Of a stretch of 64,000 bases of DNA, positions 604 through 45,178 are shown in pieces (the first letter of the stretch is position 1; every line of letters starts with the position of its first letter). The DNA comes from Bugula neritina. Taxonomy: Eukaryota > Animalia > Bryozoa. The stretch spans positions 9,293,408 through 9,357,407 of the forward strand of contig OZ037771.1 in NCBI GenBank assembly GCA_964035545.1. Direction: 5' to 3'. The position numbers and the translations under genes are program-made. The notes under the pieces are model-generated. The model had not been told where the DNA came from and searched no databases. It was given only the letters and a program-made list of their open reading frames with translations.

Positions 604-766
604 ACTGAATTTTGGAATGATTACTATGAGTGACTACTAGCACGTCTGCTCTTAACTGCATCAGCATAAGAAAAGACCGGGCAATGTGGTTGTGGCGTGT
701 GGTTGGGGCACTTCACAACTGGCGGATTAATTTCGCTCGTGGTTCCGCACATGTAAAAGTCAGTTT

Positions 767-4860: not shown

Positions 4861-5086
4861 CTCTCTCGCTGTGAGTCTGGGGCAAGATGGCCTGCGACGG
4901 TTGCGGACCTATCTCGGTGGGCGAGACGGTGCCTTGTTTGGTGTTTGCACCGGTCCCCATTCAGACTTTGGTGTCGGCAACCCGTCGAATCTGTTATGGA
5001 GTGGCATAGAGAAGGTAGCAGTTGGGCGGTGCCACTTGCCTACCCGCCGTGGCTGTTGCCACTCCCGTGAATTGGTACGCAGCACC

Positions 5087-6067
5087 CTAGGGGGTGGTCT
5101 GCGTTTCTTCTTCCCAGGAAAATTTATCTCCGGCCCGCAGTTGGCGGGAACATCTGCGGGCCGTGTAGTTCAACCTTTGAGATAAAAGAGGACAGTATCT
5201 CCGGAAGTGTCCAGGGTTTCCGCATTCCCAGCAGAAGTTGGTTGATTTCCCCGGTGGTCTCGCCAACGGCCGTGAAGGCTCATAGACGGTGTCTTCTGGG
5301 GGTTGTTGTGTAAGCGCCACCAGCAGCTTGGCCATCATGTCGGTCAGTTGTGCGACCTTCGATGTGAGGATTAGCTGTTCCTCGGCGGCAACTGTGGGGA
5401 GGCCCGCTTTGGTGTCGTCTCCAGTGGCCAGCGGCTCTACTTCCACCTGGCTGGAGACCCCGCGATTTCTATGCATCTGGTTCGCCAGAAGATAGGCTTC
5501 CCCTTCAGCAAGGGCGTCTTCAATCGTCGTGACTCCCCTCGCCAGAAATTGGTGATGGAGCCTTAGGTCGTTGACGGACTGTACAAAGGCATCAAAAGTA
5601 TACCGTTCACGGTTAACTTGAGGCAGATCGCTGTAGGCGATCTGTGCCAGCTTCATCACCGTGGTGGCGTGCTCTTGTAGCGGGGTGCGTGGGTCACGCC
5701 GCAGCCCTTGTAGTCGGGCCCGGGCGTCTAAGGCGGAGATGCCAAAACAGGCCCGCAGCGAAGCAAAGATGCTGTCGATGTCAGGTCCCAACCCATAGGG
5801 TTTGGCCTTGTCCATCAATAACATTCTCAGCTTCAGCAAGGCCACCCGGGCTGGCCATTGGGTGACTTCCATCACATCACCAAACTTCCATATGAACTGC
5901 TCTACTTCTTCCTCACCTGTGAAGGTGGGGGCCTTCAAACGGTACCTGTCAGCGACCAGCTTTCTTTGAACTCCCCTTTCTTCTATTGCGGGGTTCATGG
6001 GAACAACATTATTTTCACGCTCACCTTCTGCCAGCTGTGGGTGTAGTCCAACATTGTTCTCTGCCAT
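5087..6067 (-). CDS. gag: Gypsy gag-like protein with CCHC zinc knuckle
   Basis: 326-aa ORF containing CWECGNPGHFRRYC, directly upstream of the protease and starting 17 nt after the PBS. Confidence 0.9.
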   Translation of the reverse strand: MAENNVGLHPQLAEGERENNVVPMNPAIEERGVQRKLVADRYRLKAPTFTGEEEVEQFIWKFGDVMEVTQWPARVALLKLRMLLMDKAKPYGLGPDIDSIFASLRACFGISALDARARLQGLRRDPRTPLQEHATTVMKLAQIAYSDLPQVNRERYTFDAFVQSVNDLRLHHQFLARGVTTIEDALAEGEAYLLANQMHRNRGVSSQVEVEPLATGDDTKAGLPTVAAEEQLILTSKVAQLTDMMAKLLVALTQQPPEDTVYEPSRPLARPPGKSTNFCWECGNPGHFRRYCPLLSQRLNYTARRCSRQLRAGDKFSWEEETQTTP

Positions 6068-6083
6068 TTCTGATATACACCGT

Positions 6084-6101
6084 ATCCCACTGCTGCCACC
6101 A
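6084..6101 (-). promoter_or_regulatory. Primer binding site (tRNA-Leu-like)
   Basis: Minus strand TGGTGGCAGCAGTGGGAT, 1 nt after the LTR end ...CATAACA. Confidence 0.8.
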
Positions 6102-6519: not shown

Positions 6520-7240
6520 CTATGACGACTGTTATACTTATTAACACCTCGACTTTAATCATATCACTGAAATAACACCTAATTCTTAAACTGACACTAA
6601 CTGAACAAAAAGTAAAACTGAGACATAGTTGTACTAACTGCTAACTACTGCTGCTGCTGCCACTACCAGCACTACTACTAGCACTACTACTAGCACTACC
6701 AGCACTACTACCGGCACTACTACTAGCACTACTACTAGCACTACCAGCACTACTACCGGCACTACTACCAGCACTACTACTAGCATTACTACTAGCATTA
6801 CTACCAGCACTACTACCAGCACTACTACTACTACTAGCGCTACTACTACTAGTACTAGTAGCAGCACTACTACTACTAGTACTAGTAGCATTACTACTAC
6901 TAGTACTAGTAGCAGTACTAATATTTATACTAGACCTGTTGGTATTAATATTAGTGTTAGTATTGCTATCATCACAATGACTATGCGTAATAGTATTACA
7001 TTTACTATTACCATTACTATAAGTATAACGAACACCATAGTTAGTATAGTGATACTAATAGTCTATAGGGCTAGGCATAGGTGTAATTAGGATTACTATG
7101 ACTTATGCTTATAGTTATTACGTATTAGTATTAGTATTACTTATCACTTATTAGCTATTAGTATTAATATAAGTGTGACTATCAATATATTTAATAGCTG
7201 TTAGTATTAGTTCTACTAACAGTAATACTGCCACTTTGTC
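6520..7240. repeat. Low-complexity 3/6-bp periodic tract (ACT/AGT/AGC triplets grading into hexamer repeats)
   Basis: (ACT/AGC)n at 6634-6920, then ATTACT, AGTATT and AGTTAT type hexamers. Confidence 0.85.
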
Positions 7241-7284
7241 TCCTGTATTAAACTATATCTTATTTATCAATTAGTTCACTAATT

Positions 7285-7400
7285 GCTTTGAGATCGAGTT
7301 TCTAGATTCTAGAGTTTAGACAAAGCCAGTTGTGGCGCGGCTTATGTTACTCAGGGTCAAAGTGAAAAACACAATACCCTTGGCGGATGAATGGGGTAAA
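7285..7400 (+). promoter_or_regulatory. Probable promoter / non-coding first exon of RPP21
   Basis: Short complex, CpG-containing island between two periodic tracts, ending in a possible donor (GG|GTAAAT). The RPP21 coding exon has an acceptor TTAG just before its ATG. Confidence 0.4.
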
Positions 7401-7839
7401 TGGTGTTATTAAATTATTAGTAGTAGTAATACTAATAGTAATTGTAATTACCAAGTCTAATTAGCTAACTTTTGTACTTTAGTTTATTGTTATATTGATG
7501 CTGCTATAACCTAGAGGTGGGTCTTTCACAAATTATTTGTTGGCATTATCATTTAGTTTTACTTTTAGCCATAGTCATACTCATAGTGATTTACTTTTAG
7601 TTTCAGCCTATTATCATTAGTATAATTAGTACTACTCAAATACTGTTAGTATTAGTATTACTATTAGGCTATTAAATTTTCGTTTTACTTTTTATTTTTC
7701 AATTGTATGAAACTTATAGTTGTAATAGTACTATGGTTAATAAGTTATAGTTGTTTATTTTTAAACTCACACTTTGACGAAATGTCGAAGATAATGTCAA
7801 AAACATAATTGCAATGCCATTTTGTTTTGTCATCTTTCT

Positions 7840-9120: not shown

Positions 9121-9931
9121 CATCAGTATCCCTTTACAAGTTACTATGAGCCAAGCCTACTACTAAGCTAATCTCATTATTGATTAGTCATCAAATATTT
9201 ATAATGATTAAGTAATACTAATACTACTTATATTAACAATTACAATAATGGTGACATTTATGGCAAAACTGGTCTCTTATTTTCAAAGCTAAAGATAAAG
9301 CATTGAAGATAAACCTAAAAATAAGGGTAAAACTAAAAATGAATCTAAAAGTAGTTTTGAACTTGAAGCCCATTAAACTCATCTTCCAACTTCAATCTGA
9401 AGCAAAAACATATTTTATCATAAACAGTAATAAAATGAGAAACGAGTACCTTAAATACAGTACATTAATTTATATATTATAGTTGATGCCTTAATCTTTC
9501 AAACACTAATAAAGTATTAAAATCTTACAAGTTTATTTGAGAGTATGCTCTAGCAGTCTAGCTGCTGGAAAATATCAATTAGTTGAGCAGGTCAAGTCAA
9601 TCAAGTCTACAAGTACTTAAGTCTGCAAGTAATTAAGTCTGCAAGTACTTAAGTTATTTCAATTTCGACCCAGCTCCAATATACTGTTCCGCAAATTGCA
9701 ATAATTTCTGTGAATTTTCGACATGTGAAATTTAAAGCTCCCTGGGTTCTTCCAGAAAAAGATGCAACAGTTAATGTACTTTAGGTTACTTGAGCTTAAG
9801 TTTTAAGCAGGTGCTAGGGCTTGTTCAGATGGGAATATTGATGAAAGTTTCACAATACTGTGTTGTACAGAATTTGTATTCTATGCATGCTGCTATTTCG
9901 CTCACGTACTACATGTTTATTAGGAGTTGCA

Positions 9932-10725
9932 ATGTCAGCAGCAGTGTTCTCAAGACTCAACTTCCTGTACCACGCAATTGAGGAGCTGGTTAGTAGCGGT
10001 ATTGAGGGCAAGCTAGCTCTGATTCACAGCTACTGCAAGTCATTCGCTCAAATAGCTCAGAAGAAAGTGTTGAGGTTGGATCCTACCATCAGACGAAGAA
10101 TATGCAGGAAGTGTGTGATCTTGCTTATTCCGGGAGTGACTGCTATAGTGAGGTAGGGATGACTTTTCTAGTGGCACTCCTAGTGTGCGGGTGTTACATA
10201 TGGATGTTGGGGTTGTTTCAACTGCTGTAATCGCATCTGACAAAGTCAATAGTGTTGTCAATGTTGAACTTTATTGCTCAGTATTACTTTCTTACATGTT
10301 GTTTCTCTAGTGATGTTCATTGTAGTATTAGTTTCACTATGTTGTAGGCACCGGTCAAAGCGACAGAAACATAAGGTGGTGACTTGTCAGCTTTGTGGAA
10401 CCATGAGGAAATATTATGACCTCTCTGGAAAATCATTTAGCATTGAAGCAAATACTGCAACAGGTATTGTATTCACTAGTATCATGTTGTGTGCAATAAG
10501 TATGGCCAATTTGTTATTTTCTTTCACTAGCAATGTCTCTTGGAAAACAACTCTAATTGAGAAACTGCTATAGTTCAATAATTCTAACCATGTATGTTCC
10601 ATTAGTTGTTTTCATTGCAGTTTCTCTAGATTTCAAAACTTGTATTTTGCAACCTGCTGTAATTTCTTTCAGTTGTTACTAAATTTAACCTCATTAATAT
10701 TTTTAATCTTTTAGGCAATGGTTGA
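9932..10725 (+). CDS. RPP21: Ribonuclease P protein subunit p21 (Rpr2/Rpp21), ~115 aa
   Basis: Exons 9932-10152, 10348-10463 and probably 10715-10725. Motifs RLNFLYHA, KKVLRLDPTIRRRICRKC..LLIPG and VVTCQLCGTMRKY (two CxxC zinc-ribbon pairs). Confidence 0.9.
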
Positions 10726-11177
10726 TATAGTTATGTTCTTCCTTACAATGCTTGCAAACTAGCTACATGAAGTACTTCGTGGGTATTTGGAGTTGTCTCT
10801 CCTCTTATAGCTGAAGACGCTCATCTAATTATCAATTATGTGAGTGTAGGTTGGGTAACGTTACTGCTGAAAATAGGACTTTTGAACATTTATATTATGA
10901 TAACATAGGAGTTTTATAAGCTTATTGAAGCGTTGCAATACATTGATAAAGGTTGTAAGCTTTAATATATGTATTATGTTTATTACTGAATATAATACAA
11001 ATTTACTCTCTTGGAGTTGTCATATTTATGTTTTGCATCAACCAATAACTTAATAAACCTATATTTTGCTTCATAATAACCTTGGTATGTTCTACGAAAC
11101 AGAATGCAATCCAATAAAAATATTAGCTTAAATCAAAATATTATATTGATCTGTTAAATAAAAATTTCTCACCACTT

Positions 11178-14100
11178 TCAAACGCAACTATTTTTTTTTT
11201 GATAGTCACAAGTGCAAATATCCACATTAAACTGCAGTTGAGCTGGACATCGGAATGTTCCCATTATATTGAAAAACTGTCCCCCGTAAGATGGTATTGC
11301 CTGATGAAATTCTTGGCATTTCGTGCTTCTTTTTACTATATATCTGTAATCATAAAAAGCTAGTTAGATATTTTGCTGTTAGTTCGACACAACATAAAAA
11401 ATTTCTGCTTCATTAGCTATGCATAATTGGCAAGGTTCAAGTGTGAAAGTTCCAAAACAGTGAAGTAAACTGTTTTGGAAACGAATTTTTAGAACTGATT
11501 AGCCTAGTCAAGTTTCAGTCTCCTGGTGCCTTTTCGTGTCGTAAGAAAATCTTCCAGAAAGGAGCTACAAATTTGGAATTGTTTGCCCTTTACATAATTC
11601 ATGTGGAGTTTATTTTTACGATGAACTTGAATCCTGTATTAAGTATAAAATTTAATGTTTCCACATTATTTCTAAATTTTTTTAAAGCCAAAAGATACTA
11701 TAACTACTCATCTATGAAAAGTTGTACCTAAAGCTCTCAATGCTTTTTGTTTCATTCCTCAACAAATATTTTCACAACTCCATATGTCACCAGAACAAGT
11801 TTGTTTTATCATAATAATGGCACAAAGATTTATCGTTGAATATTAGTGCATTGAAAGAGATATTTATATTTGTAATGCAACTCTTTTCATAATCAATCTT
11901 TTTGTCTGACCGACATTGTTAATATTGTGTATATTTATTCTGTGATACTGCTGATCTATCTCTATTTGCAAGATAAGCAATATGGCTGTTGAAGAGGGAT
12001 AAAACTAAAGCTAACTCACATGTTTCCATTCTCCTCGCACCATGACATGGTTGCTAAATCTTTTTCCATTAGTTTTCCTGGTTGTTGACCAACTTGCGCT
12101 ACGAAAAGAGGGCATTTATTTTATACTACATCGTAAAATTCTCTGCAATGTCTGATTATATGAAAACTTCCAGATTTCATCACATGATTCAAAGTCACTT
12201 ACGTTTGTAATGTTGCCTAGCAGGCATGACAGAACTAGGTGAGGCATACTGTGCTGACTTTCTTGCCATCTCATAGTTTGTGTTCCATCGCTGTGTTGAA
12301 GTCTGCTTGTAAGGGTGTTTGCTTGCCTCACCATACTCAGTATGACTGGTTCTACTACTTGGTTTGATGGCCGTGTTTCTCATTTGAAGTCTTGGTAGAG
12401 AGGTGTGGGCTGATACAACTGCAGAGACATGCAGTGTCTTTGTTGTGAATTTAGTTTGTAGATGTTGCTTGTTTATTATTTGTCGCGGTGCTGCGTTTGT
12501 TCTGAGATACCGTGCTGTGGTTGTATAGGGAGACCGTGTTGTGGTTGTATAGGGAGACCGTGTTGTGGTTGTATAGGGAGACCGTGTTGTGGTTGTATAG
12601 GGAGACCGTGTTGTGGTTGTATAGGGAGACCGTGTTGTGGTTGTATAGGGAGACCGCGTTGTGGTTGTATAGGGAGACCGTGTTGTGGTTGTATATGGAG
12701 ACCGCGTTGTGGTTGTATAGGGATATCGTGTTGTGGCTGTATAGGGATATCGTGTTGTGGTTGTATAGGGATATCGTGTGCCTGATACATGGTGTTTGAT
12801 ATGTTGTTGAGTTGTTGTAGGATATTGTGGTGTTGTGCTACCCAAAGAGCTTTTAAATGTAAGAGGAGAGTTGTGAGGGAAAGTAACTGGTATAATAATG
12901 TCATTCCAGTACTTGAAGGGGGTCTGTGCCAGCACATACCTGCAATATTCTACTTCTCTTGAAAATGTGTGATGAGGCATAATCTAGGGAAGCATGACAA
13001 ATGCTAATATCTATGTATTATATTACTATATGCTTGCATATAATGAAAGTATTGCATCTAATATGACACTTGTTTGCTAAAATTATTGTAATGTTATAAT
13101 TAATAATAATAAAACAATATAAAAAACTAATAAAATAACAACCGGCTACAAAAACTATCATTGGTAATGATCTTTGTGTGAAAATCACTGGTGCTGAGTG
13201 TAATAATTCATATAGTTGCATATATAAAGTTTATGTATAATATTTATGTATCATACACTTTATTATGTGATATGACCATATCAGCAGTATTTTACCAGGA
13301 TACATAGAGGTAGGTGCAGTAATGGAGAAATTGAGAAAAGAAGTTATGTTCTCGCAAAAATTTCAACCCCTGCCCCAAACCAAAATTTACTAATAAAATT
13401 ATAGAGCTTAGGCTATCTCAATTTCTCTACTACCACTCCTAAATGAATACACAGTTTCATTGCTCTGCTTTACCTGCATTGTATATCAGTTACATTGGTG
13501 CCTCTGGGAATCTCCCATTCAGCACGAAAATATGTAGAGTTGGTCCACAAATACTTCACCACACTGGCAACCTAAAGCAGTCGATGAGCAAATAAATCAG
13601 CTATGAAATATTAAAATTTACTTAATAGGAAAATGGATTTCTTTCACACAGACTTTTTCACCAAAGCGTGTTTAGTTGTGAACTGTCATTTTAATTATGA
13701 GCTGTGCATTTATTTCAGATAACTAGTTGTTTGATATATAAGCATCTAGTAAAATTACTCAGTGAAAAAGTGTTTCCAATATATTCATTTAGAAAGAAAC
13801 TAGATTAAATATCAATATCAAAAACAATTTACTTTTTATTTGATTGCATATTTAAAAAATGGCTAATGCTTCTAGTAAAGTTGACACAGGTCAAAGAAGA
13901 AAACAGAAATTCCATCCATATATGAGTAAGCAACAGATGGAAAAGCTGGTATATTTTATTCGGAATAAATGGAACTGGTTGATGTATGCAGCATAGAGTT
14001 GACCTCAGAGATCTTCAATTACTTTCTCATGTGTCATTTTATTGGCATAAGGCTTGAAAGGCTCTTCTTAATGTCATAGTAATTAACATATTGAAATGGC

Positions 14101-18812: not shown

Positions 18813-21800
18813 TCATGTATCAGTTATGATGTCATCAGTGATGTCACCAACTTGGATATCTTCAGGTTCCTCAGAACAAGAGGAAGTTGTCTCCACGTTA
18901 GCAGTAGACGAGACATCATTCCAGTCTGCGAACACATACATAATGTTATTATATTTCTGTTCATCATTTTCCTGGCTAACAGAGTGCATATTAATGTTAT
19001 GAAGCTGTATGTTGATGTGGGGTAACTCCTAATGTTGATTCAATTTCAATCAGTAAAACATGATCAAGTTATCACCTATGCTTATCAGTAACAAGCCTCT
19101 ATACCAAAACTTATATAACACAGAACAGCAGCTGCTTAGTCCGGAAAAATGAAAATTTGAGACCCACTTCTTGGTGGTCTTCAATGTTGATAGTTGATGC
19201 CTTATGAGCATGTCATATAGCAAAGTATACCATCCAGCGGTAAAGCGACTCTATGTAGTTATGCTAGAGTAGCAGTTACATTGCATTGTGGTATATATAA
19301 ACACACAGGCTCATGTGTGCAGGCATGCACACACACACGGAGATTACATGACCATAAAGGTTAACAGAGCACAAAATTGTCCATGTTATGTATTTGAAGC
19401 ACTAGAGTCTAGAAGAAGCTACATTTGAATACTTCAGCAGTTTATGCCTTCACAATGAGCATGGAGTGAATGATTTCAACGAAAGAGCCGTAAATGAGTA
19501 CACAAAACTAAGTCACCCAAGCCAATTGGTTGGCATCTAATATACTAACCAATCAAATTCGTCAAGATTTGATCAGGCCACAGCCATGGCATGTATTCTG
19601 GATTGTTCTTTTTCTTCCAAACTTCATAAACTCTGCAGGCCTTCACCATCTTTTGTATAACCTGCCCAGAAGAAACAAGTAAGTTTAGTAACAACCCTGC
19701 AGGCATGTGAGGTGTGATATAACCTCCTCATCTACTAATCATTAAACAAACAATCTATGACCTCCCAGATAATCAGTTCCTATAAACATGGTTAGAGTTA
19801 TTATATATTATCAATAGGCCTACCTTTGGAGCAACAACTGTGAACAACTTGTTAACCAACAAAGCTGGAATTTTCCCTATAACACAGCAGAGCATGTATA
19901 TAGTATAATAACTACTGTATACATTTTCAAAGAGAGGAGTGAAGGGAAAGCATATTACTACCTTCCTCAACAGCTTCCTTCACACAGCTGAAGATTTTCA
20001 ACAACATTTTATACATTGATATAGCTTAACATTTACAAATTCAACAAACAATGCCCTTCAACACTGTAGGATACAAAAGCATACAAAACACAATGCTGAT
20101 AAGCATCAATGAATGAACGACTACTTGGTGATGCAGGAACGCAGATAACATATCAGTTTTAAACTGCAGGCAATAAATTTTTTAAATGTGGCAGTTAATG
20201 TTTTACATTCCGGGATGCTAAAACAGAGACACCCATAAAGTGAATATAGTCTAGGTTATTTCAAACTTTCTGTCTCTAGAAGATTTTATATAAAAAAAAC
20301 GTTTTTATAAACTTGATAGGAAATTAGACTATCATAAAATTTATTATTTCATCATTACACTACTTTCATATGTATATATAAATTTGGGCGAGATACCAGT
20401 AGCTGAAACTTTAACTAAATGGCTATAAGCACAATGGTAAATACCAACTATAAAGGGATAAAATACATGCTCACCCCCAGGATTTGATTGACTGATATAA
20501 GTAAACCTGGTTGCTTGTAGACCAATAACTTCCATGACATAACCTGTATAGTATGAGGTTCCTCTGATAATATTCTTTCTAGGAGGCTCTTTCTAAACAC
20601 AACACATTTCTTATGAAGCACACCGAGTTGCTACTATGACATATCAAACCCACTTTGTGGTACACAGAGTGGCTCAATATCTCATATTATACTTACTTTG
20701 TGGTATACAGAGTGGTTCAACATCTCATATTATACTTACTTTGTGGTACGCAGAGTGGCTCATTATCTCATATTATACTTACTTTGTGGTACACAGAGTG
20801 GTTTATTATCTCGTATTATACTTACTTTGTGGTACACAGAGTGGTTCATTATCATGTACTGATTGCCATCATGTCTCCAAGATCTTTGGGTGACAAAGTC
20901 TCGATTTCTCAGAGGAGATGGCGTCTTGACTACAACAGAACACTAATTTGAGTCCAGGGCATGAGTATAGTCAACATTAGTATGTCAGTAACATAGATTA
21001 GACACAAGGACCTGCTAATACACTAAAATATGGAACTGTGGTACACTAGTGCTAGAGTTCAATCAACTATGTACAAATACGGCCTTTAAATTGTAACATA
21101 AACAAATTAGAAACCTGGACACATGATTTAAACCACAAAATATAAATTAACCAATTAAAAATATATTACTGGATATAAGGTGAAAAATGGCGTTAGAGAT
21201 AATACAAATGTTGAACACATCAAATTCTAAGGACAACTATTATACACTAGTTTGCAAGCTTATACACATGGATTTTTCATTCAATGTTTAGGAACAGTTG
21301 CGCGAATGAAACCACAACCATAAGTTAATGTAAACAGCGACCACAAGCCCACCCATTCAAAACAATAGAAAGGCAGTGCTTTTGTAAACTTAAACTGTCA
21401 CTCATAGTATACACCACATAGCATACAACAATTCTTTTGAGAAGTGCTGAAAACAGCTCAAAATTTAAAAAATAAATTGGTCTTATCGTAGTAGCTAAAA
21501 GTCACCTTGATAGTAGCCGATATCGTTGTTAGAGTCTATAACACAGACCTCTCTAGACTCCACCATTTCCTTATCCCACACTCTCCTATATGCTGCATCG
21601 TGGAGAGCATTGTACATGGTTGAGGCAGCTACATCAACTGAATCAACTATAATCTACATGTAAAGAGGTAGGTCAGTGCAATTCTACTACAAAACTATAT
21701 AAGTATATATAAGTATAACAAGTATATATAAGTATAACAAGTTTAGCAAAAGCAAAATGCTTTTATCGGCACACCATTCATAAAAGATGCCGAAACTTTG

Positions 21801-23539: not shown

Positions 23540-24430
23540 TTGCAGTAACGGTCACGTTATAGTTACTCACTTAACTACAAACTTATAAAATAATAGTAAT
23601 AGTAATAATGGGAAGCATCTATCTGGGATGACACCAAATATAATTAATAATTATAATGATGCTTTATATTTAACAGGTTCCTTTTCAGCACTGGTTGGAG
23701 TTTTCAAAAAGCTAAAAACAAATCACACAAAATGAGAATGACCTTCATCTTCACTTGTAGAATAGATTTAGCTTCTACAGTTCTAGTAGCAATTCTAACC
23801 GCAACAGTAACACTGAGTAACACTAATACTAACAAATATTAATAAAGGGTGTCAGGTGCTGTGCGTAATAAAACTAAAAGTAAAATGCCAAGGGTATTTG
23901 ACTAATTCAGAAAATGCCCTGAAAGCGTTTCAGTATCAGTATGTAATACTGTCATGTAATAACTTATAAGTATAACAACTACACAGAAGCAAACGCTTCA
24001 AATTCAAGACTAAAAGAGTTGAATTATCAATTAAAATAAAATCATATCGGCTCTAAATACTATGAATATCAATATGTAGTTGTACTACTAATTACTAGAC
24101 CTAGTACTAGTAGTACAGTACCAGTAGTAGTAGTAGTACTAGTACTTGGCTTAAAATTCTGTATATACTGATAGTGATTGAGTGATAGTGATACTCATAC
24201 TGATGCGCTTTGACTTACACTTAGAGTTGGTCTTACAGTTACAGTAACAGTTAGACTCAGAGTCAAACTCATAGTCATAGTGATAGTTGACTGTTGAGTG
24301 TTGAGTCATACTCATACTGATACTCACAGTGATAGAATATAAATGTTCATGTTTATGTTACTGGCTAAAATTTGAATTTGAGGTTTGAAAATATACTAAA
24401 ATTAAAGGTTTACTTTCACATCACTAATAG
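23540..24430. repeat. 6-bp periodic low-complexity tract (left flank of promoter)
   Basis: e.g. ATACTGATAGTGATTGAGTGATAGTGATACTCATACTGAT and AGTAGTAGTACTAGTACT. Confidence 0.8.
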
Positions 24431-24690
24431 ACATTAGTAGAACCCACTAAAACAGCCCACAGTGCACCGAAATGAAACCAAATGGTCTAGGGCGTTCTCG
24501 AACGTGCGAATTAACATTGTGATTGTTATTGTCAATTTCGAGGGAGAAACTATAAACAAATCTAATGAATGCGTTCGCTGTAATAGTTGTAATTTCACTC
24601 TTAAATGTTTTGCGGGTGCGCTTTGTTGGTGATCCATTAAGAGTTGAAGAGAGCTTGCTACGAAAATTTGGGTCAGGGTTTGCTCTATAA
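24430..24690. promoter_or_regulatory. Probable bidirectional promoter for STARD10 (-) and the IQ-SCHIP1 gene (+)
   Basis: CpG-enriched complex island between two divergent genes whose first coding exons both begin with splice acceptors. Confidence 0.5.
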
Positions 24691-24699
24691 CATTGATTA

Positions 24700-26210
24700 T
24701 AATATTATTTAAATAATTTATAATAGTTCAATTATTTCACCAATTCGTTAATGGTCAACAACATCTACTTTTAGTTTAAAAAATTGTATTACAAATATTG
24801 CATTTTTGCATGACCATCAGTATCACTATGAGTATCACTATCAGTATGACTATGGTAATAGTAGATCACTCAAAGTCAATCACAGTGACAGTCTGAGTCA
24901 CACTCAGTCACTGTCAGTGTCATTGTGAGTATCATTGTCAGTGCCAAACTCAATCACAATGTCAATATCAGTATCACTTGCACTTACACTTACAGCTACA
25001 CTATCAGTGCCGAAGGCGAATGATTCTATAAGTATAAGCGGCTCCAAGCTGGTGGTGACTGAGTGCAATAGTTTAACTTTAACTTTAAGTTATTAGTTTG
25101 CGGTTCTCGAGTTTGGAGTTGGGGATATTAATTGGAACTTGGAATCCCAACTTTAAACTCGAGAACTGCAAGTGCAACTGCAAGCTATTGCATTAGCACT
25201 CAGTTGCCACCTACTAGTACTAGGAGCTGCTTACAGTTATAGTTATACTTTATAGAACCATTCATCAGTACCACTTACAATTGCCCTAACTCTCACTCTT
25301 AATCTTAGTCTTATTCTAATTCTTAATTCCTACGAGTATGAGTATCAGTATGAAATTAAGTGTCAGTCAGTATCACTATCAGTTGGAGTTACGCTTACAC
25401 TTACTCTTAGTCTTGCAGTTTCAGTTGCCGTACTGGTACAAGTACTACTAGTACTAGTAGTACTAGTAGGATTCTGAATTACCAATATGAATATGGATAT
25501 CATTATGATTATCATTATAATTATTATAAATATAAGTATTATTATCATTATGATTATGGTTATGGTAATTAGGTGATGGTACTACTGCTAGTGGGCAATC
25601 ATCCAATAACTCACTAGTCTTATGGGACTAGGTAGTGTTACACTTGCAGTTTAGTTACTGTTGTTTCATACACAATATGCAAAATGGTTGCTTTGCACAC
25701 AAACTGCTGTCTGTCTATTTTGTATAAAAAATGAATAATAAATTGATCCACTGGATAACCTCTTGAATGGTACTAGTTCACTTATTTATTGCATCCCAGC
25801 TCCCTTACTCTTCCAGCATGTTTTAACAAAAAATATATGCAGTAACTATGTGCTGCCATCTACTGATAACAATATCTAAACCAAGATAGCAGTTCTCCCC
25901 TAACATCTACGTTTCACAATAATCAATAAGCATACAGTGAAATGAAATGTGCAAGTTACTTGTGAGCAGTTCTGTATGACTCAAACTTCAAATAAATAAA
26001 TATATCAAAAATATGTATTTTAAGTAATTTAATGTGTACAAAACGACCTATAAAAATGTCTACGAAATGACCTGCTCGCTAACAGTTACTGTCAGTCATC
26101 AATAAGAATATGAGTATCAGTATGAGTATGATTTAGAATATTACTAGTACTATGAGTATCAGTATGACTATCACTGTGAGTATGGCTATATACTATTACT
26201 ATAGTGGGTT
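24700..26210. repeat. 6-bp periodic low-complexity tract (right flank of promoter), interrupted by ordinary sequence at ~25660-26080
   Basis: e.g. ATCAGTATCACTATGAGTATCACTATCAGTATGACTATG (from 24815) and ACTCTTAATCTTAGTCTTATTCTAATTCTT (~25295). Confidence 0.8.
25018..25263. repeat. Imperfect inverted repeat (hairpin / MITE relic)
   Basis: Arm 25018-25126 aligns to the reverse complement of 25144-25263 (GAATGRTTCTAT..GCRGCTCC..GGTGG..ACTGAGTGC..GTTCTCGAGTTT..AGTTGGG). Confidence 0.85.
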
Positions 26211-27718: not shown

Positions 27719-30700
27719 ATGGCAGAACCTCTTCAAATAAACCACGATGCCATAAACAATCTCATTAGTTTCTCAAATTCTGCAAGCACAGAGATGAAGA
27801 AATCTCTAGAATCAAGTTCTGATTTTGACACTTTAGATCATGATCGTGCTAAACGGAACTACAAAGTTATGGAGGTATTTTGTTTTGAGGTCCTGTGAGA
27901 GTAACTTTTGGTTTTGATGTTTTAGGTATTCTACTAACTTTTAAACAATTATTTTCATATATGGTTTTAGATTCTGGATCCTAAATTGGCAAAAGAAACT
28001 CTTCCAGAATGTTCTCAGGTAGTAATTGGTTTTATATTCTCATTTTTGTTCCGGACCGTATTTTAAGTAGATTTTGTTTAAGCTTACACTGTAATGTCTA
28101 GACGATGAACCACGTCAAGCTTACTTAATCAGATGTGTCTACAACTGTTATATCTAGTTTGTATAACATTCTGTAAGCTGTGTTTCTACTAAATGTATGC
28201 TTTCAAACATAGTTTTACACTTTTTATTGCGTGCATTTTGTCGTATCTCAAGTTCGTTATTTTGGGTTGCTTTTTAATATTCTAAATGTTCATACGTATT
28301 GTAAATTTGCAGTGAGATATTATATATTTTCACCGCAATAACTGCGTTTGGGTTTCCTCACCTAAAAACTAACCAATTCATGCTGTATCAATACAGAACC
28401 ACAAGGCTATAAACTCTATGGCAGAAATTGTTATTGTAAAAATCCATCTAGGGTTAATCTTATCAAGCAATTTCTATAATTATAATTTTAAGATATCTAA
28501 GTTATCTTGGAAAAGTAATTTAATAATCATATATTTAATCTATGGAGAGAAGTAATAGACGTAAACAAAACTTCGCAACTATTCTTAGAAGAATGTATAA
28601 AGGTGAGATATAATTGACGGAACTTCACATGGTGTATTCTAGTGATCATGTATGATAAATATGGTGGGGCATTATTGGATTTAAATTTGATAGATTAACT
28701 GCTTTAGTAAATTTATATCCATATTCTTTGAATGTGACTGTGTGGTGCTTATTTTCACAGCAGATGGTTTTTATGCAGGGAGAGAAAAGTGAAGGCCATT
28801 CCAGAGACAGAAACGAGGAAATCCGTTGTCGTGCCGCCATTGTTATTCAGTCGTACTATAGAGGTTACAAGGATAGGCGCAAGTTTGTGGAGCTACTTTA
28901 TGATTTGTATGAAAAGGTAAACTAAGGCATGAAATTATATAAAATAGTAGGGTGTTGCTTGGATGTAATTGAAATGTCTGTATCCATTGAACATCGGGAT
29001 CTTCTAGAAAAATGATATCTTTCAACTTCTTTGCACTGAATTTTATCCTTTTTAGTTTATCAAGTAGCAGTCAGACTTGTAGTTCATAAATTTCTGTGTT
29101 TTAATTGTACTGTAGATGTTGTACAAATTGATATTAAATTAAATTTGTTTGAGATCTCTACTTCATATAGTTAGTTACAATATACTTTAGTAGTAGACAG
29201 TCATGGTTTAATGAATAAAAGTATATACTATCCCTGTTGTCTGATTTTCATAACGGTCATTGGTGATGTCTGAAAAGTTACAAAGGTTACTGTCTCACTC
29301 ATGCCCTTATGTAATATTGTAAACATATAAAAAGTATATTACTCTCTAGTAGTAAGTTGAGTCCTGTTTCTTGTTTATAGGAAGAAGAAGAAAGAAGAAA
29401 TAGGGCTGCCCAACAAGTTGAAGAAGGTGAACTACTGGTAGCCAATCACACGCTTGAAGTTGATATCGAGGATGCGGAGTTGATTGCGAGGAATAAACAG
29501 CGGAGATTTGAATCTCAAGTAATCACGTGAGTCGATTAGCCACAGTTAGTCTGTGAATCAATCAGTTAGTCAGTCTAAACCAGTCATTGAGCCCAATTTA
29601 GTTTAGTTGTGTAGTTGAGGGTATTGACTGTAAGTAGCTTGTGTTGTATATCATTTTCAGACTCTAGTGTCATTAGTATGACGTTGAAATGGCTTGTCCA
29701 TGTTTCTAGTTCATAACAAATTATTTGATCTAAAAGCTGCATGCAGAAGCTTGTCGTTATGTCATGAGAATACCCTTGAAACACACATTTTATTGTTGCA
29801 GAATACAGCGAGCTTGGAGGTCGTACAGGCTGCGGCACAACTCATCCCGTCTACCAACAGGTTTGTTTTCAGACAAAACTCAACCAACTCATTCTATTAA
29901 TGTTTGCTATTGATAAAGCATAATATTTTGTTGAGATATCCTAAAACTAAGGAATATTATTTTAAGGTAGTTTAATTTATAAAATTTAATTTTTCATTTG
30001 TAATTATGTGCTCTAATATTTTCTAAAGATATTAAACTATCCCTTGTTACTTATTGCACGAAATTCAATTTGTATTTTATAGTGGTAAATGATGACTTAG
30101 CATGCGAATGGTAATTTGTTTATTCTCTTTGGTTTTTGTTGGTTTATTTGGATTTGAATATTGGCTGAGACTACTTAGCGTGTGATATATAAAACTCAGA
30201 CATGTTAAATGCCTGAGTTTTAAATGTTACTAAAGCCATTGTCATGTATTTGCTAAGATATGGTACCAGGTTTTAGCAATTAATAGTTGTATGCTGATTT
30301 GTCAGGTTTTCATGCTCCTATTATATTTCCATAGCCATACATTTTTAAATCATTTTTTGTTATAGTGTTGCAATAAATTCTTTACTGTTTTGTAACTTTT
30401 AAAAGGTGGCCACAAAATTAGATTAACAATTGAAAGCCTACTAGATTAATCTCAAACAAATATTTTAAGATACTGTAGTATTCAGCAGGAAGACCCAGTG
30501 CTAATCTCATTCTGTATTTCTCAGGAATGCTCTTCAACTATGCAGTGTTACAAAAACTTGTGTTTATCGTGTACCTTGTAATCTGACAACACTGAGTGTC
30601 TCTGTTACCATATTGCATACATGTGTAGATGTGTTCCATGCTGAAACTTCCACCACACCCAGTTTGTATAGATTCTTACTTTGTTCCAAAAAGGCATAGA

Positions 30701-37946: not shown

Positions 37947-38681
37947 TCAATTAAATATAAATGAATTTGTTGAATATTCTTGTGAGGTATAGTTTGTTCT
38001 ATATGTGTACACTGAGCCATCAGCTGGAGTAACATAGCCAATGGAAATTAGGATAACATCTATAAGTGTCCAGACACCTAATCCTCCAAAGCTAAATAAT
38101 TTACCTATTCCTTCTTGCCAATGACCTAAATAGAACCGATCTGCACCAAACCCACCAGCTGTAATGCTAAGAATCATGGTGGTGGTCCAACTATATCCAT
38201 TAGTCCAGTAACACAGTTTTCTTTTGGAAAACTTCCTTTTCCCTAGGCAAAGGACATTTGGTTTCACTTCACATGTAGCAGTATAAACTCGGGTAGAATG
38301 GGTGCCTATTGAGTTACAGGAAGTGTTCGTTGAGCAACTATAATATTCCTCTGGAAGTTGGTAGCAGAACTGACATGTTAGATTGCGTGAATGGTTTCTT
38401 TCACCTGAACATGGAACAACGTTCAACACTTGCACAGCTACTTCTGTTATTTCTCCATATTTACACGTTACATTGCAATTGGTGATTTCTTCTAAGCAGT
38501 TGGCTCCCAGCAACTCACAATTGGCATTACTGGGACAATCAGGATAAGATACAGGGTCAGCAGTTGTAAAGACAGCAGTGGTGTTGGAGGCCATTGATGT
38601 GGCATTTACTTCACCAGTTATTGAAGTGTTCATAATTGATGTAATCAAAAGCAAGAGAATTATGGTTGAATAAGAGCCCAT
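37947..38681 (-). CDS. TM2D3: TM2 domain-containing protein 3 (almondex-like), single coding exon, 244 aa
   Basis: Signal peptide; Cys-rich ectodomain (CQFCYQ, VLCLGKRKFSKRKLCYWTNGYSW); TM2 domain LSITAGGFGADRFYLGHWQEGIGKLFSFGGLGVWTLIDVILI..PADGS. Confidence 0.95.
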   Translation of the reverse strand: MGSYSTIILLLLITSIMNTSITGEVNATSMASNTTAVFTTADPVSYPDCPSNANCELLGANCLEEITNCNVTCKYGEITEVAVQVLNVVPCSGERNHSRNLTCQFCYQLPEEYYSCSTNTSCNSIGTHSTRVYTATCEVKPNVLCLGKRKFSKRKLCYWTNGYSWTTTMILSITAGGFGADRFYLGHWQEGIGKLFSFGGLGVWTLIDVILISIGYVTPADGSVYTYRTNYTSQEYSTNSFIFN

Positions 38682-39579: not shown

Positions 39580-40590
39580 TCAGAAGACTAGTGCTCCGAA
39601 ATGTACTAGTAATGTATTAGTGATAGTAGTACTACTACTAGTAGTAGTACTAGTAGTGGCAGTGCCAGTAGATGTGGTAGTAGTAGGAGCAGCAGTAGTA
39701 GTATTAGTATTACTACTCTACTACTAGTAGTATTAGTAGTAGAAGTAGTAGTTACTGTTAGTAGTAGAAGTAGTAGTTACTGTTAGTAGTAGAAGTAGTA
39801 GTTACTGTTAGTAGTAAAAGTAGTAGTTACTGTTAGTAGTAGTTACTGTTGGTAGTAGAAGTAATAGTAGTAGTAGCAGTAGTAGTAGTACTGGCAGTAG
39901 TAGTAGTACTGGCAGTAGTAGTAGTAGTACTGGCAGTAGTAGTAGTAGTAGCAGTAGTAGTATATGTAGTAGTAGTGGTGGTACACTTACAGCCAGTGGT
40001 TGTATTAGTAGTAAGAGTCGCCCACTCAACATAAATATAATTACTGATTACTATGGTAATCTCAACGTTTAATGGCCATGATGATCATGATGATAAAATT
40101 AAATCATTATAATAATGATTATTATTATCATTATGGTGATGGTAATGATTATAATAATTATCATCATTAGACTTAGTGATACCCTTACCCACAGTCAGTG
40201 ACTGTGAGTGATACTGATAGCAAAACTCATAATCATAGTGATACTGATAGTTAAACCCAATGTGAAACTCAAACTGAATGTCATTGTCTGATTGTCATTG
40301 TGATTGTCAAATTCAAAGTCAATGTCTTGGTCATAATCACTTCATAATCAAGCCACCATACTCATAGTGATAGTCATACTCATACTGATACTTATACTAA
40401 TAAATACTCGCACTAGTGAATGATACTGATAGCTATACTCATAGTCAATAGTCATAGTGATACTCATAAGTCATACTGATAATGATAGTGAAACTGAGTG
40501 CCAGTCTGATTGCTCAACCGTGATTGATGATGACATTTTGATTTACTGATACTGATAGTGATGCGAGTGATACGGATAGCGATTACGATT
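39580..40590. repeat. 3/6-bp periodic low-complexity tract (left flank of promoter)
   Basis: (AGT)n with a 24-bp higher unit at 39730-39850, then ATACTC/ATAGTG/ATAGTC/ATACTG hexamers. Confidence 0.85.
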
Positions 40591-40599
40591 GTTTTATTT

Positions 40600-40900
40600 T
40601 TACCTTATTTGTAATCTTTGGAACGTAGGATTATTATTACAATATTTTTATTCAATCTATAAAGGTACAACTAATAAGATTAAAACAAAATGTTAGCGGA
40701 TTAGGCCTCATAAAAATTTGATTCTTAGAGTATGACGTAACTGTAAGCTAGTCACTTTAAAAGTAAAACTCTCAACAGAAATCAAAACTTTCCGGAAACA
40801 AATTTTATGATAAAGTTCTGTGACGGAATCGCTGCTGTGATTTCGGGTAATGTTGTTGAGGTTACAAAATTTTCATTCGCAATACGAGGCGAGTACGTGT
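40600..40900. promoter_or_regulatory. Probable bidirectional promoter for TM2D3 (-) and WRAP53 (+)
   Basis: CpG-enriched island with TGACGTAA (CRE/ATF-like, ~40733) and TTCCGGAA (ETS-like, ~40790); minus-strand donor AAG|GTA near 40603; both genes have acceptors upstream of their ATG. Confidence 0.55.
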
Positions 40901-41039
40901 GATAAAAATTAATGTATTTCTAATTCACGCAGTATTGAGGCATAGTTTCATTTTAATCCAAGTTCAATGTCTTAGCTTTGCGACTTTCACTTTGGGTCCA
41001 GGCGAACTTTTCACAAAAAGTTATGATGGTTATCACTTT

Positions 41040-41780
41040 TTAATATATATTGTTGTCACAATTGTCAATTACTATAAGTATAACTATAAGTATAACTTAA
41101 ACTAAATTACTGTAAATGTAAGCATTAGATTTAGTTTAACTAACACTAAATCTAATACTAATAGTAATACTAATAGTAAGACTTTTACTTTTAGCTTTAC
41201 TAATGCCAATGGTGATAGTTATAGTAAGACTAATGTAAAACTAAATGTAACACCAACTCCAAGACTGGTACAGTGGTAGTAATAGTAATACTAAGAATAA
41301 GTTCAATAGTAATACTAATAGCGTAATACTAATAGTAATAGTGATACTACTAGTAAATGTAATACTAAGACTAAAGTACCTAATAATAGTATTATTAATA
41401 AATAAATTTAGTATTAAATGTAGTACTAGTACTATTCTATAAATTATAACTATAACTTATAGTACTACGTTTAATACTTATAGTTATAGTATAAGTATAA
41501 CTATATAAATTCTAATGGGTATGAGTATCACCATCAGTAATGACTACGAGTAATATTTTAGTAATAAGCATTGGTAATACTAATACTAAAACTAATAGTA
41601 TTAGTAATACTAATACTAATAGTAATACTATAATGGATAATATAAATATCATATTATAACTAATAATTAGTTGCTATAACTATAAGTATAAGTTTAACTT
41701 GTACTTGAATAAGATACTCGCACTGAAAGTCAACCTCATAATGATGATGATAATTCACAATATTTATTAATGACTTAGAC
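41040..41780. repeat. 6-bp periodic low-complexity tract (right flank); resumes at ~45180-45400 after the TE block
   Basis: AATACTAATAGTAATACTAATAGT and ACTATAAGTATAACTATAAGTATA. Confidence 0.85.
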
Positions 41781-42335
41781 TGATGATACAAAACTTTTTA
41801 AAGCAGCAGATAGTATTGGTTACACTAAATTGTTGCAGGAAGATCTTAACACTTTATGCACTTGAGCGACGGCTTGGCAAATTTCTTTCAACGTAGAGAA
41901 ATGTAAGTTAATTCATTGTAGATATACGTAATAATCATCTTATCGAGTACCAGGTGTATGATATACCGCTTGCTTCTTCCACTGAAGAAAATATCCATGG
42001 AGTGAGCGTTAAGCGAAATTAGAAGGACCGTCACATTAGTTCGTGTGTAGTAAAAGCAAATAAAATATTAGCAATGATAAAAAGGACTTTTAGCACTAAA
42101 AGAGGGATATCTTATTGAAACTTTATAAATATCTTGTTTGGCCACGCTTAGAATGTGCTGTTCCTGCCTGGTCTCCCAGTTTGTTAAAGGACATTAAGCT
42201 TATTGGAGGAGTTTGGAGAAGATTTACAAAATTAGTATCATCAAACAAAGAGAAAGACTATAATCTATGTAAAAGAGGACTTAAACTAAATACCCTAGAA
42301 GTTAAAAAGATTAGTTGCAACTTTATACAAACTCA
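41778..42335 (+). mobile_element. CR1/L2-like LINE fragment (end of RT and C-terminal region)
   Basis: DDTKLF..LLQEDLNTL..WQISFNVEKCKLIH, KANKILAMIKRTF, LYKYLVWPRLECAVPAWSP. Confidence 0.85.
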
Positions 42336-45178
42336 ATCGTCTGCGGGAGATCTTTGACCGCCACCGGGCAGCAGGATTAAAGTTGAAGCCCACCAAGTGT
42401 GCACTCCTACTGCAGAAAGTCAAGTATCTTGGAAACGTGGTCGGCCAGGACAGTGTTGCTATGAATTCAGACAAGATACAGGCTGTGAAGGAGTGGACTG
42501 TTCCCCAAGATCTCCACAAGTTGCAGGCATTCCTGGGCCTGGTAAGGTACTACAAGCAATAGGTATCAGTATTCGCTTGGGTGGCACAGCCTTTGAGTTG
42601 GCCAACTGCCAAGAGGGTCTGGTGGCCGTGGACACAGGAGGAGCAGCAGGCATTTGACCACCTCAAGGACTGGCTGGTAGAGGCACCCATCCTGGCCTAC
42701 CCAGACCCAGCCAAGAAGTGCATCTTGGACACAGATGCCAGTGACCACAATTTGAGGGCTGTGTTGCTCCAAGTTTAGGGTAGAATATAGGTGGTAGTGG
42801 CCTACTACAGCAAGGCTCTTTCGACTGCCGAGAAGAACTGCTGCGCCATCAAAAAGCAGCTCCTGGCAGTAGTCAAGGCGGTCAAGCACTTCCGGCCATA
42901 TATTCATGAAAGAACGTTCAGGTTGCGAACTGACTATGCATCACTGATATGGCTGTGTAAATAAGCCAACCTTTTAGTCAGGTGGCCCGTTAGTTGGAGA
43001 TCCTTGCTGACCTCTAACACATTGAGCATCATGCTGGTAAAAAAGCACCGGTATGCCAATGGTTTGCGCAATTGTCTGGGGGAAAACTGTGAGCAGTGCC
43101 TGCATATAGAGAAGCAGGACAGGAGACCCGCTTGCCTTGGCGTCAAGGAACAACTGGGTAAGGCAGGTGCCTACAGCTGGAAAGAGGGCCACTTGTGGTC
43201 TGAAACCCACTCTGATACTGTCAACGCCCTTCGTGCCAACCCCACTCTGTCCCCAAAAGGTCAAGGAGCTGTGCCAACTCCAGGAGACGCTGCTTGGCGT
43301 AGTGGCGGACATGCCCCAGACCAAAAAAGAGAGAAGATGACCTAGTAACTAGGAGCAGCAACAGAAAGACGTTGAGTTTCAACATTTCTGCCGCCGCTTG
43401 GATCCCCTCCGGTTCAACCAAGATGGATTGTTAACCATATTGCTGGCAGCCGACACCTGTCACCAGGAGAGAGAGTGGTCTGCCCACTCACCCGCCGACG
43501 GGAGTTGATCAGGGACACCCATAAGTAGACCCATAACTGGAGCCAGTCCAGTGACCAGATGCCTCCAGCTGTGGTGGTACTGGCCCAGATTGACTCAGGC
43601 CGTGCGACTGCGGATACGGCAGTGTGAGATCTGTCAGGCTAGCGAGCTTGGCCAATGCCCGAGACCGCCGGTCAGCTCTGGCTCTACGCTGACCTACTCT
43701 GGTGCTCACGGACCACTTCACCCAGTGGGCAGACGCTCTAGCTTCGCCAAACGCGTCAGCCTCCACAGTGGCTCGGGACCAACAAGTTTTCTGTTACTTC
43801 GAGTTGCCCAAACAGATCCACACAAGCCCGACTGCCCAGCTCTAGTCTCAGCTTATGAGTGACCTCTGCCGGATATGGGAGGGGGGGTTCAGAGTCGGGC
43901 AACCCCATGTCGCCTGCAAGGGAATGGAGTCGTTGAGAAGAACAATAAGATGTCGGGTGACGCCTTGAGGAGCCTGTTATTACGCAAGAGCCAAGAGGGA
44001 TGGGATGTTGTGTTGCCGCAAATCATGTGGATATACCGCAGCTCACCACACTCCAGGTCACAGGTGACTCCCGACCTCTAGATGCTCAGCCGGGAGACCT
44101 GGGTTCTGGATCACCTAATGTATCATGTTCCTGCGCCCAAGGTCCCCGTACATGAGTATGTGGAGAAACTGATGGACTGGATGCAGACAGCCCATGAAAT
44201 TCTGCGAGAGAAGCAGTGAAAGGTGCATGGAGAAGATTTAGAAAAACCTCCCCTTCCATATCGAGTCGAAGATTGGATTTGGTGCCGGCAGCGCTGACTG
44301 GGACAGATGGCAAGGAGCTCCCGGCAATAGCCACCCCTTTTCATCTGTTAGATATATTGTGTCTGTTTTCTGATTTCCTTTATATATATATAGTTGCTTA
44401 CATGTGTTTTCTTTTAGTTTTGATCAACTAGTCATATAACATATTTTTCCAGTTAACTTTAACCTATGCTTTTTTTCTTTTTTGCGTTTTTAATATGTTT
44501 TGTTTTTGTTTTCTGTGAGACCGAATTTTCTTCTATTATTAAAAAAGGTAGTAATTTTCGATGGGGAGAGGGTATAGTCAATTTGAGGATCTATTCATGC
44601 CTTAATTGTTTATGTGAATGCCTTAACTATTTACTTTGTGTGAATGCCTTCATTATGTTCTTTGTGTGAATGCCTTAACTATTTACTTTGCATGAATTCT
44701 TTAACCATAATTATTATAGTTAATCTATTGGCATAGTTTTTTTGTTCTGTAAATCCAGCTTTGGCTGGGTTCGAACATCCCGAAATTTGAGATGTTCGTT
44801 TCGGGAAAACTCGGGCATCTGAACTGGGTTCGAACGTCTACCTCTATCCGTTTTGGATTTTGATTCCAAATCGGATGTCCGATTCGGCCGTTTCAGGCGC
44901 CTGAATGCCATTTGGACACTCCGATTTCGGAAGGTTCTGGAAGTTTAGAGTTTCTAAGTATATAAGGGCAAGCTTTCTAGAGTAGATTCAGTCTACTGCT
45001 GGAGCTCAAGGATTACACTACTACCAAGGCTGATTGTGCAAGACTGCACCTGGGTCTCTTTTACTACAAGTGGATCAATAAAGCTATCTACAACCGAAAC
45101 TCTGTCTTCTCTCTCTAACTGTAAAGACCTTATGTTTACCTAGCTTAAGTTCTGATAACAACCCGCAAGAACATCACA
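42336..45178 (+). mobile_element. Second Ty3/Gypsy element, 5'-truncated and heavily decayed, with 3' LTR
   Basis: AGLKLKPTKC, APILAYPDP..ILDTDASDHN, KHFRPY, DHFTQW, QGNGVVEKNN; colinear with and clearly related to the pol at 1300-3420. PPT GGGGAGAGGG at 44563-44572. Confidence 0.92.
44573..45178 (+). repeat. 3' LTR (~606 bp)
   Basis: Follows the PPT; TATATAA at ~44959, AATAAA at ~45077, ends ...CATCACA; contains three ~26-bp TGTGAATGCCTT.. repeats. Confidence 0.7.

Follow-up and report, generated by a model that had tools for sequence, protein, structure and literature searches.

Hexamer-periodic tracts beside CpG-island-like cores in Bugula neritina and their apparent growth by local 6-bp events

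We analysed a 64-kb stretch of the genome of the bryozoan Bugula neritina (contig OZ037771.1, positions 9,293,408 to 9,357,407; hereafter the window, in which all coordinates are counted). The window is CpG-depleted, with ~64% A+T, and belongs to a genome of 216 Mb. Three clusters of DNA with a period of six bases, here called hexamer tracts, were found in it (6630-7675, 24077-26200 and 39600-41700). The original prediction, made from the letters of this sequence, had described 23540-26210 as hexamer-periodic DNA on both sides of a CpG-rich island. The periodicity was recovered in four tracts (A to D) between 24077 and 26200, but 23540-24076 is only weakly periodic, and two transposable elements (25018-25263 and 25654-26075) share the span with the tracts. 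The clusters are laid out as follows, where S is C or G, W is A or T, and MITE is a miniature inverted-repeat transposable element.

6630-7675: cluster 1, (ACT/AGC)n and TATTAG-type tracts flanking a short core (core 1, 7231-7404)
24077-24335: tract A, left of core 2, units A-S-T-S-A-T and T-A-S-A-S-T
24336-24805: core 2, non-periodic and unique, between tracts A and B
24806-25017: tract B, units T-S-A-S-T-A and T-G-T-S-A-S, lattice orientation opposite to that of tract A
25018-25263: palindromic MITE copy, between tracts B and C
25273-25580: tract C, units drifting from TCTTAA and GAGTAT through ACTTAC and (AGT/ACT)n to TATGAT
25654-26075: second multi-copy repeat, ~420 bp, between tracts C and D
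26097-26200: tract D, (TAT-SAS)n
39600-40560: left tracts of cluster 3, (AGT)n with a 25-mer higher-order repeat, then A-S-T-S-A-T units
40561-41059: core 3, non-periodic and CpG-island-like, between the left and right tracts of cluster 3
41060-41700: right tracts of cluster 3, units AST-ATA and AST-AAT

Clusters 1 and 3 share the build of cluster 2, as had been foreseen, and within the window the layout is confined to these places, the remaining identity between bases six positions apart (lag 6) being due to satellites and to ordinary arrays of (AC)n or (GT)n. All three clusters adjoin CpG-island-like cores and, judging from the sequence, 5' coding exons, in agreement with the proposed link to promoters. 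Domain matches confirmed an Rpr2/RPP21 exon at 9860-10156 (+; Pfam), 2.2 kb right of cluster 1, an IQ-motif exon at 28728-28925 (+), preceded by an ATG-initiated open reading frame (ORF) at 27719, and a TM2 ORF at 37947-38681 (-), whose ATG at 38681 is 0.9 kb from the tract; the left tracts of cluster 3 are positioned between this ORF and core 3. No other assembly has a record of the TM2 protein, and a second assembly of the species was not found. The name STARD10, given to one of two divergent genes beside core 2, was not confirmed: its candidate exons, searched singly and not as a joined model, had no Pfam or PDB matches. No tRNA genes were found in the window. Cores 2 and 3 are non-periodic, as the prediction of spared core promoters had it, and core 2 has a single match in the genome; a genome-wide match search found no second haplotype of it in the assembly. 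The observed/expected CpG ratio (o/e) is 1.07 in core 2 (12 CpG) and 1.43 in core 3 (18 CpG over 40560-41060), as in CpG islands, where it is near 1 in a CpG-depleted genome; it reaches only 0.61 in core 1, and most of the window's other 1-kb bins lie at ~0.2-0.5, with a background of ~0.3-0.4. The description of core 2 as a CpG-rich island is therefore right by o/e but not by composition, the G+C content of the cores being 31-32% (0.31 in core 2). Core 2 is probably an unmethylated, possibly bidirectional promoter.

Lag-6 identity was judged against dinucleotide-preserving shuffles, whose own identity was 0.26-0.30. It was 0.577 in tract A (shuffles 0.271 ± 0.030), 0.609 in tract B (z = 10.5), 0.646 in tract C (z = 15) and 0.633 in tract D (z = 7.1), the z-scores of the four tracts spanning 7-15; those of the other clusters were 13.6 (cluster 1), 20.8 (cluster 3 left) and 12.7 (cluster 3 right). 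At lags 7 and 8, identity in the tracts is at or below background. At lag 1 it is ~0.1, AA, TT, CC and GG being nearly missing, and the tracts lack CpG. That they are not simple microsatellites was confirmed by Tandem Repeats Finder (TRF), which splits each tract into short 6-, 12- or 18-nt arrays with 65-90% match, and the predicted drift of the unit along the tract is gradual when read in hexamer register. The rule that units keep an A-S-T triplet also held, with an A-S-T density of 0.104 per nt inside the tracts vs 0.041 outside; successive A-S-T triplets are separated by 6 nt in 43% of cases, by 3 nt in 26% and by 7 nt in only 2%. The grammar of the tracts is (A-S-T + NNN)n, with W letters copied between neighbouring units. 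Saturation of all frames with stop codons was considered and ruled out, since ORFs of 40-60 aa cross the tracts.

Comparison of neighbouring hexamers in 8.9 kb of tract, taken from the window and from other loci, gave 114 identical pairs vs 314 with a single-base difference. C<->G exchanges made up 158 of these 314 differences, 117 of them in the A_T context and 31 in the T_A context. When each base was compared with the base 6 nt on, C/G was swapped 107 times and kept 127 times between A and T, and swapped 43 times and kept 38 times between T and A; in non-palindromic contexts C<->G swaps are near zero and the differences are transitions. T-S-A-S-T-A neighbours were identical in 8 of 60 pairs in the local data. 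Among the first 100 places in the genome that match three such units, only one had all three identical. Four ordinary satellites or minisatellites of the window served as controls.

12509-12779: 24-mer, x11
20652-20853: 43-mer, x4.7
49020-49570: 15-mer, x37
52183-53957: 20-mer, x89

Copies within these arrays are distinguished almost solely by transitions, no array having more than three C<->G exchanges among dozens of transitions.

One explanation of the tracts would be micro- or minisatellite slippage and unequal exchange of promoter-near repeats, combined with a local C<->G and A<->T substitution bias. Homogeneous (AGT)n and (ACT)n runs do occur inside the tracts, as do higher-order repeats (a 25-mer x4.4 at 97% and a 45-mer x4.7 at 87%), and length changes in whole units, as in short tandem repeats (STRs), A-S-T spacing being 6 or 3 nt in 69%. 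In STRs, however, neighbouring copies of one unit are highly identical and the substitution spectrum is transition-dominated, whereas in the tracts lag-6 identity is 0.55-0.65, the units drift and C<->G exchanges prevail. Identical neighbours are fewer than neighbours that differ by a C<->G flip alone (114 against 158), and homogeneous three-unit runs are as rare as 1 in 100. Mostly non-identical neighbours with an excess of C<->G are the opposite of the outcome of slippage, and we consider slippage with biased substitution an unlikely origin of the tracts, although not a negligible one.

The most direct view of single events came from the MITE copy at 25018-25263. This element has the properties of a MITE, being short and multi-copy with terminal inverted repeats and a target-site duplication. 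Its family is represented by at least 54 matches when the window copy is used as the query and by 781 first-look candidates with a clean copy, and the consensus of 26 copies is a non-repetitive 173-bp palindrome. While 30 other copies are 162-199 bp long (median 172), the window copy measures 246 bp. It is flanked by ATCAGTGCC (25003-25011, inside tract B) and ATCAGTACC (25264-25272); such 9-bp flanking direct repeats were found in four copies, exact in one (L004) and with 1-2 mismatches in three, the window copy included. Six extra bases, GAAGGC, lie at 25012-25017 between the left duplication and the start of the MITE; these could be a terminus peculiar to a subfamily or one more 6-bp insertion.

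The additional length of the window copy consists of gained hexamer-type blocks of +6, +12, ~+19 and ~+25 bases with AGT/ACT alternation, and none of the 30 other copies has such blocks. CTATAAG became CTATAAG-TATAAG; GC-TTATAG-AA became TTACAG TTATAG TTATAC T TTATAG; AACTGCAAG became ACTGCA AGTGCA ACTGCA; AGTTTG became AGTTTA ACTTTA ACTTTA AGTTAT T AGTTTG; and CCCAACTCGG became TACTAGTACTAG. The duplicated triplets are ATA, GCA, TAT and TTA, and the three cleanest events conform to a unit T-NNN-A-S. The consensus contains five S-T-NNN-A-S sites, two of which are among the expanded sites. More than ten unduplicated A-S-T sites of the window copy show no C<->G flip, and its remaining differences from the consensus are mostly transitions. 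Since unduplicated sites are unflipped, the flip arises with the new unit, and since the blocks were gained by a foreign element, the process adds ~6 bp at a time to any DNA in the zone. The tracts thus grow by local 6-bp events, the C/G flip arising at the birth of a unit; both the recurrent +6-bp events and the xxx-AST-xxx structure of the original prediction are found in this copy. In another MITE copy (L003:1501-1520; G000 C3:14542355), the AGT-AGT site expanded in the window copy has received 7 bp, TTATATA, which hints at a preferred site for insertion.

The MITE also bears on slippage, which requires a pre-existing repeat, yet here non-repetitive sequence was expanded at several sites; its unduplicated A-S-T sites did not flip, and its point differences are mostly transitions. 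A further explanation would be hypermutation near transcription starts, in which a cytosine deaminase, uracil excision and REV1-type bypass would flip C/G in the W-S-W contexts of pre-existing repeats. The dominance of C<->G transversions would suit such a process, as would the location, which resembles the near-start reach of somatic hypermutation; somatic hypermutation acts near transcription starts. However, no flips are present at the more than ten unduplicated A-S-T sites of a MITE lying in the zone, the C->T transitions that deamination would produce show no excess at the flipping sites, and the 6-bp duplications are left unexplained. Hypermutation appears very improbable on these grounds.

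Tracts of this kind are abundant in the whole genome. Five A-S-T triplets at period 6 occur at 69,224 genome sites vs ~17 by chance (our own estimate from base composition), the T-S-A lattice at 11,141 sites, and three T-S-A-S-T-A units (an 18-mer lattice) give 6,867 matches vs ~1 by chance. About 10 distinct clusters were counted over the initial 257 kb of contig 1 in addition to the three in the window, which extrapolates to a genome total of the order of 10^4 clusters, by our guess similar to the gene number. The link to promoters appears to extend beyond the window. In ~200 kb of unrelated loci, non-tract 300-bp windows averaged a CpG o/e of 0.53 when a tract lay within 700 bp vs 0.37, and o/e was at least 0.8 in 22% of these nearby windows vs 6%; the p value of this comparison (4e-9) is inflated by the overlap of the windows.

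The prediction had also called the layout strand-symmetric. Counts of pentamers support a mirror arrangement locally: WSTSW outnumbers WSASW in tract A (16 vs 5) and in the left tracts of cluster 3 (33 vs 5), and WSASW outnumbers WSTSW in tract B (16 vs 7) and tract D (8 vs 0). The mirror thus holds around cores 2 and 3, but not genome-wide, where pairs of lattices at a 470-500-bp gap were divergent in 67 cases, convergent in 108 and direct in 116 + 101. These near-equal counts rule out a mirror, or a lattice polarity linked to transcription, as a general rule, and the arbitrary orientation speaks against a process specific to the transcription strand.

Selection on promoter flanks or first introns could also account for the tracts, if it maintained a functional lattice in which only W/S identity matters and C and G are interchangeable; the lattice could exclude or position nucleosomes, insulate, assist DNA unwinding or replication origins, or provide a signal at the RNA level. 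Thousands of loci adjoining CpG-rich cores would agree with such a function, and so would the strict composition, with almost no AA, TT, GG or CC, no CpG, W kept and S free. On the other hand, units, lengths and orientation vary by locus, orientation being near random, and conversion of a newly arrived MITE points to a mutational origin. In addition, a CpG-dense region at 50.4-50.9 kb (up to 22 CpG per 470 bp, o/e ~0.9) has no adjacent hexamer tract; this region could be an unmethylated repeat, or else a promoter belonging to a different class. Known nucleosome signals use the helical repeat, which a 6-bp period does not fit. A selected lattice is an unlikely explanation in our view, ranking somewhat below slippage, although selection and a mutational origin are mutually compatible.

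We favour, with moderate confidence, the reading that the tracts are serial break-and-rejoin scars of the type left by hairpin-forming transposases, laid down in the open DNA that flanks promoters and later reshaped by slippage. According to this model, a local insertion process would act in the DNA beside CpG-island-like promoter cores, and each event would duplicate ~6 bp of resident sequence in a unit frame T-NNN-A-S. A/T letters would be copied faithfully, while the joint base would end as C or G irrespective of the parent unit, so that every joint would be an odd palindrome W-S-W', mostly A-S-T and less often T-S-A. The chemistry would be that of a staggered double-strand break, presumably in the germline, whose flanks close into hairpins, reopen beside the tip and rejoin; resolution of the hairpin would turn the flanking base into its complement and add a palindromic neighbour. 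Repeated events at the same places, together with slippage and unequal exchange, would build drifting hexamer arrays, the latter two processes producing the homogeneous (AGT)n runs and the 25-mer and 45-mer higher-order repeats. The flips argue for this model because hairpin closure and off-tip opening leave, in the middle of a short odd palindrome, a joint base that is either unchanged or complemented, and in the tracts the flips are confined to A_T and T_A contexts, at ~50%.

Three schemes reproduce every clean event alike, and sequence alone cannot tell them apart. The break could have a 5-bp stagger with one palindromic nucleotide added, or a 7-bp stagger with ends joined by a 1-nt overlap, or a 3-bp duplication could be left with an AGT/ACT end remnant that carries a central mismatch. 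The mechanisms proposed in the original prediction, a footprint with a 3-bp target-site duplication plus an AGT/ACT end remnant and a hairpin-type joint, here of a 5-7-bp staggered cut, both give the sequences seen; no element having the required properties was found.

Excision and repair scars are known as a kind, and what would be new here is that they accumulate in arrays beside promoters throughout the genome; the literature searched gave no account of tracts like these. On excision, hAT elements leave behind deletions and also palindromic insertions whose centre is the complement of the element-adjacent base, which hairpin resolution explains (PMC5873905), and flank hairpins are formed by MULE, hAT, Transib and RAG (PMC5499845). 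On this reading, the tracts resemble the footprints of hAT (Ac/Ds, Hermes), MULE and Transib and the coding joints of RAG in that a short tandem duplication arises at a break in accessible DNA, with a joint base that is itself or its complement at the centre of an odd palindrome, here W-S-W' (PMC5873905, PMC5499845). They differ in the length added, which is 6 (sometimes 3 or 7) and not the 8 or 7 of hAT, the 9 of MULE or the 5 of Transib; the duplication retained in hAT footprints, of 8 bp or, once a base is lost, 7 bp, has no counterpart in a period of 6 with a spacing of 7 in 2%. Furthermore, tens of units are stacked in an array, by extrapolation at ~10^4 places, the joint base is almost always C/G, and no matching element was found.

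Tc1/mariner elements offer a second comparison. In the Sleeping Beauty footprint, TAC(A/T)GTA, the 3-nt overhangs of the element ends pair with a central mismatch. The tracts share with it a constant triplet whose middle base is either of two complements, as A-(G/C)-T between target copies, which corresponds to the 3+3 scheme of the original prediction. Unlike Tc1/mariner, however, the process does not target TA, the duplicated triplets of the MITE including ATA, GCA and TAT; the gain is 6 and not 5, and T-S-A joints occur too. The periodic An/Tn clusters (PATCs) of Caenorhabditis elegans are a lineage-specific, genome-wide feature of introns and promoters of germline-expressed genes, with A/T runs at the 10-bp helical period, and are thought to be selected against silencing. 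The tracts are likewise a lineage-specific, genome-wide periodic signal in the non-coding DNA of a gene class, but their period is 6, A/T runs are avoided and insertional growth is evidenced directly. Promoter-associated STRs are similar in their short-period enrichment near transcription starts, which two reports describe for vertebrates and other eukaryotes (PMC3566118, PMC4725869). Most such STRs repeat a single unit almost perfectly and evolve by slippage, in contrast to the drifting units, rarely identical neighbours and complement swaps of the tracts.

Several points weigh against the reading as break-and-rejoin scars. The direct evidence for single events comes from one MITE copy, and that MITE has a 9-bp duplication itself. 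The repeat at 25654-26075, inside cluster 2, gained no hexamers. Period 7 or 8, which classical hAT scars would lead one to expect, is missing from the tracts, and the near-exclusive C/G at the joint requires the added assumption of a cut-site preference. The arrays could be shaped or maintained by selection. Finally, no element or nuclease with a 5-7-bp stagger was found (of the hAT families, one was examined), and in that family tract-like flanks were seen at 2 of 3 autonomous copies and at ~2-3 of 30 ends (~4-5 of 33 in all).

The genome contains intact hAT transposases, among them three identical 563-aa frames of the family in question (L040-L042: G000 C1:30460867, C3:28903730 and C5:1592417). 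The element ends in CAGGGTTGGGGTCAA; 382 termini match CAGGGTTGGGGTCAATTACA within 2 mismatches, and all 100 among the matches listed are exact. Its target duplications are 8 bp long (nTnnnnAn), and its ends (L046-L075) carry subterminal TAATTG/CAATTA hexamer arrays. The family is very young and probably active. It is not supported as the agent, with its 8-bp duplication and little preference for tracts. Nor did an element turn up that combines AGT...ACT termini with a 3-bp duplication. A peak at 6 in the indel-length spectrum between paralogous repeat copies was discarded as evidence, being caused by the TAATTG subterminal repeats of the hAT family itself.

The same repeats bear on the idea that the tracts are not host DNA but decayed internal or subterminal arrays of transposons, foldback-like or of the hAT subterminal type. 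A resident family with subterminal hexamers and a palindromic MITE located in a tract would be in keeping with it. Tract units are different, though, having no AA/TT and an A-S-T lattice; the cores and flanks are unique, the arrays share no termini, and the MITE consensus is clean of hexamers. We regard this as the least credible of the explanations, even below hypermutation. The related possibility of one large foldback element was rejected, as only 25018-25263 is palindromic and the core is unique.

A different version of the break-and-rejoin model would place the cutting activity in the host: a domesticated transposase-like or RAG-like nuclease, or another recurrent promoter-linked staggered break, would cut beside open CpG-island promoters in this lineage, hairpin-type repair would add 6 bp each time, and the arrays would be the cumulative germline record. 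We consider this version improbable, to about the same degree as a selected lattice. If true, it would be new in kind, a hitherto undescribed mutational process linked to promoters and creating new DNA at about ten thousand gene starts.

If the tracts are serial scars, a large share of gene starts would be flanked by newly made DNA, written a few bases at a time and recognisable by its signature, a gain of 6 bp whose joint base is randomly one or the other of two complements. Such tracts would constitute a deep natural record of germline cut sites and a route to short-period repeats without slippage, and would provide a handle for finding the responsible nuclease or transposon. For annotation, the tracts should be taken neither for simple repeats nor for conserved regulatory motifs; in this genome they are promoter markers.

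Other mobile elements were found in and beside the clusters. The repeat at 25654-26075 has at least 44 matches of similar lengths at 73-84% identity, covering query positions 95-515; terminal inverted repeats are not obvious in it, and close to each of its ends is a copy of the 9-bp direct repeat AGTTACTGT. G+C-rich (~55%) pieces of long terminal repeat (LTR) retrotransposons adjoin cluster 1 on the left (1-6100) and cluster 3 on the right (~41750-44300), in which Pfam models of a zinc knuckle, an aspartyl protease and an integrase zinc-binding domain matched weakly, with scores below the cut-off, the last as follows.

43551-43862: integrase zinc-binding domain (PF17921), below the curated cut-off

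Two transposons within cluster 2 and two LTR elements adjoining clusters 1 and 3 indicate that these zones accept insertions, and the LTR pieces suggest that retroelements, too, land preferentially in these promoter flanks. In the same assembly, Ras-family genes on small contigs (G000 C101, C110, C66 and C33) are full of in-frame TAA/TAG codons, which would fit a ciliate contaminant with a reassigned code.

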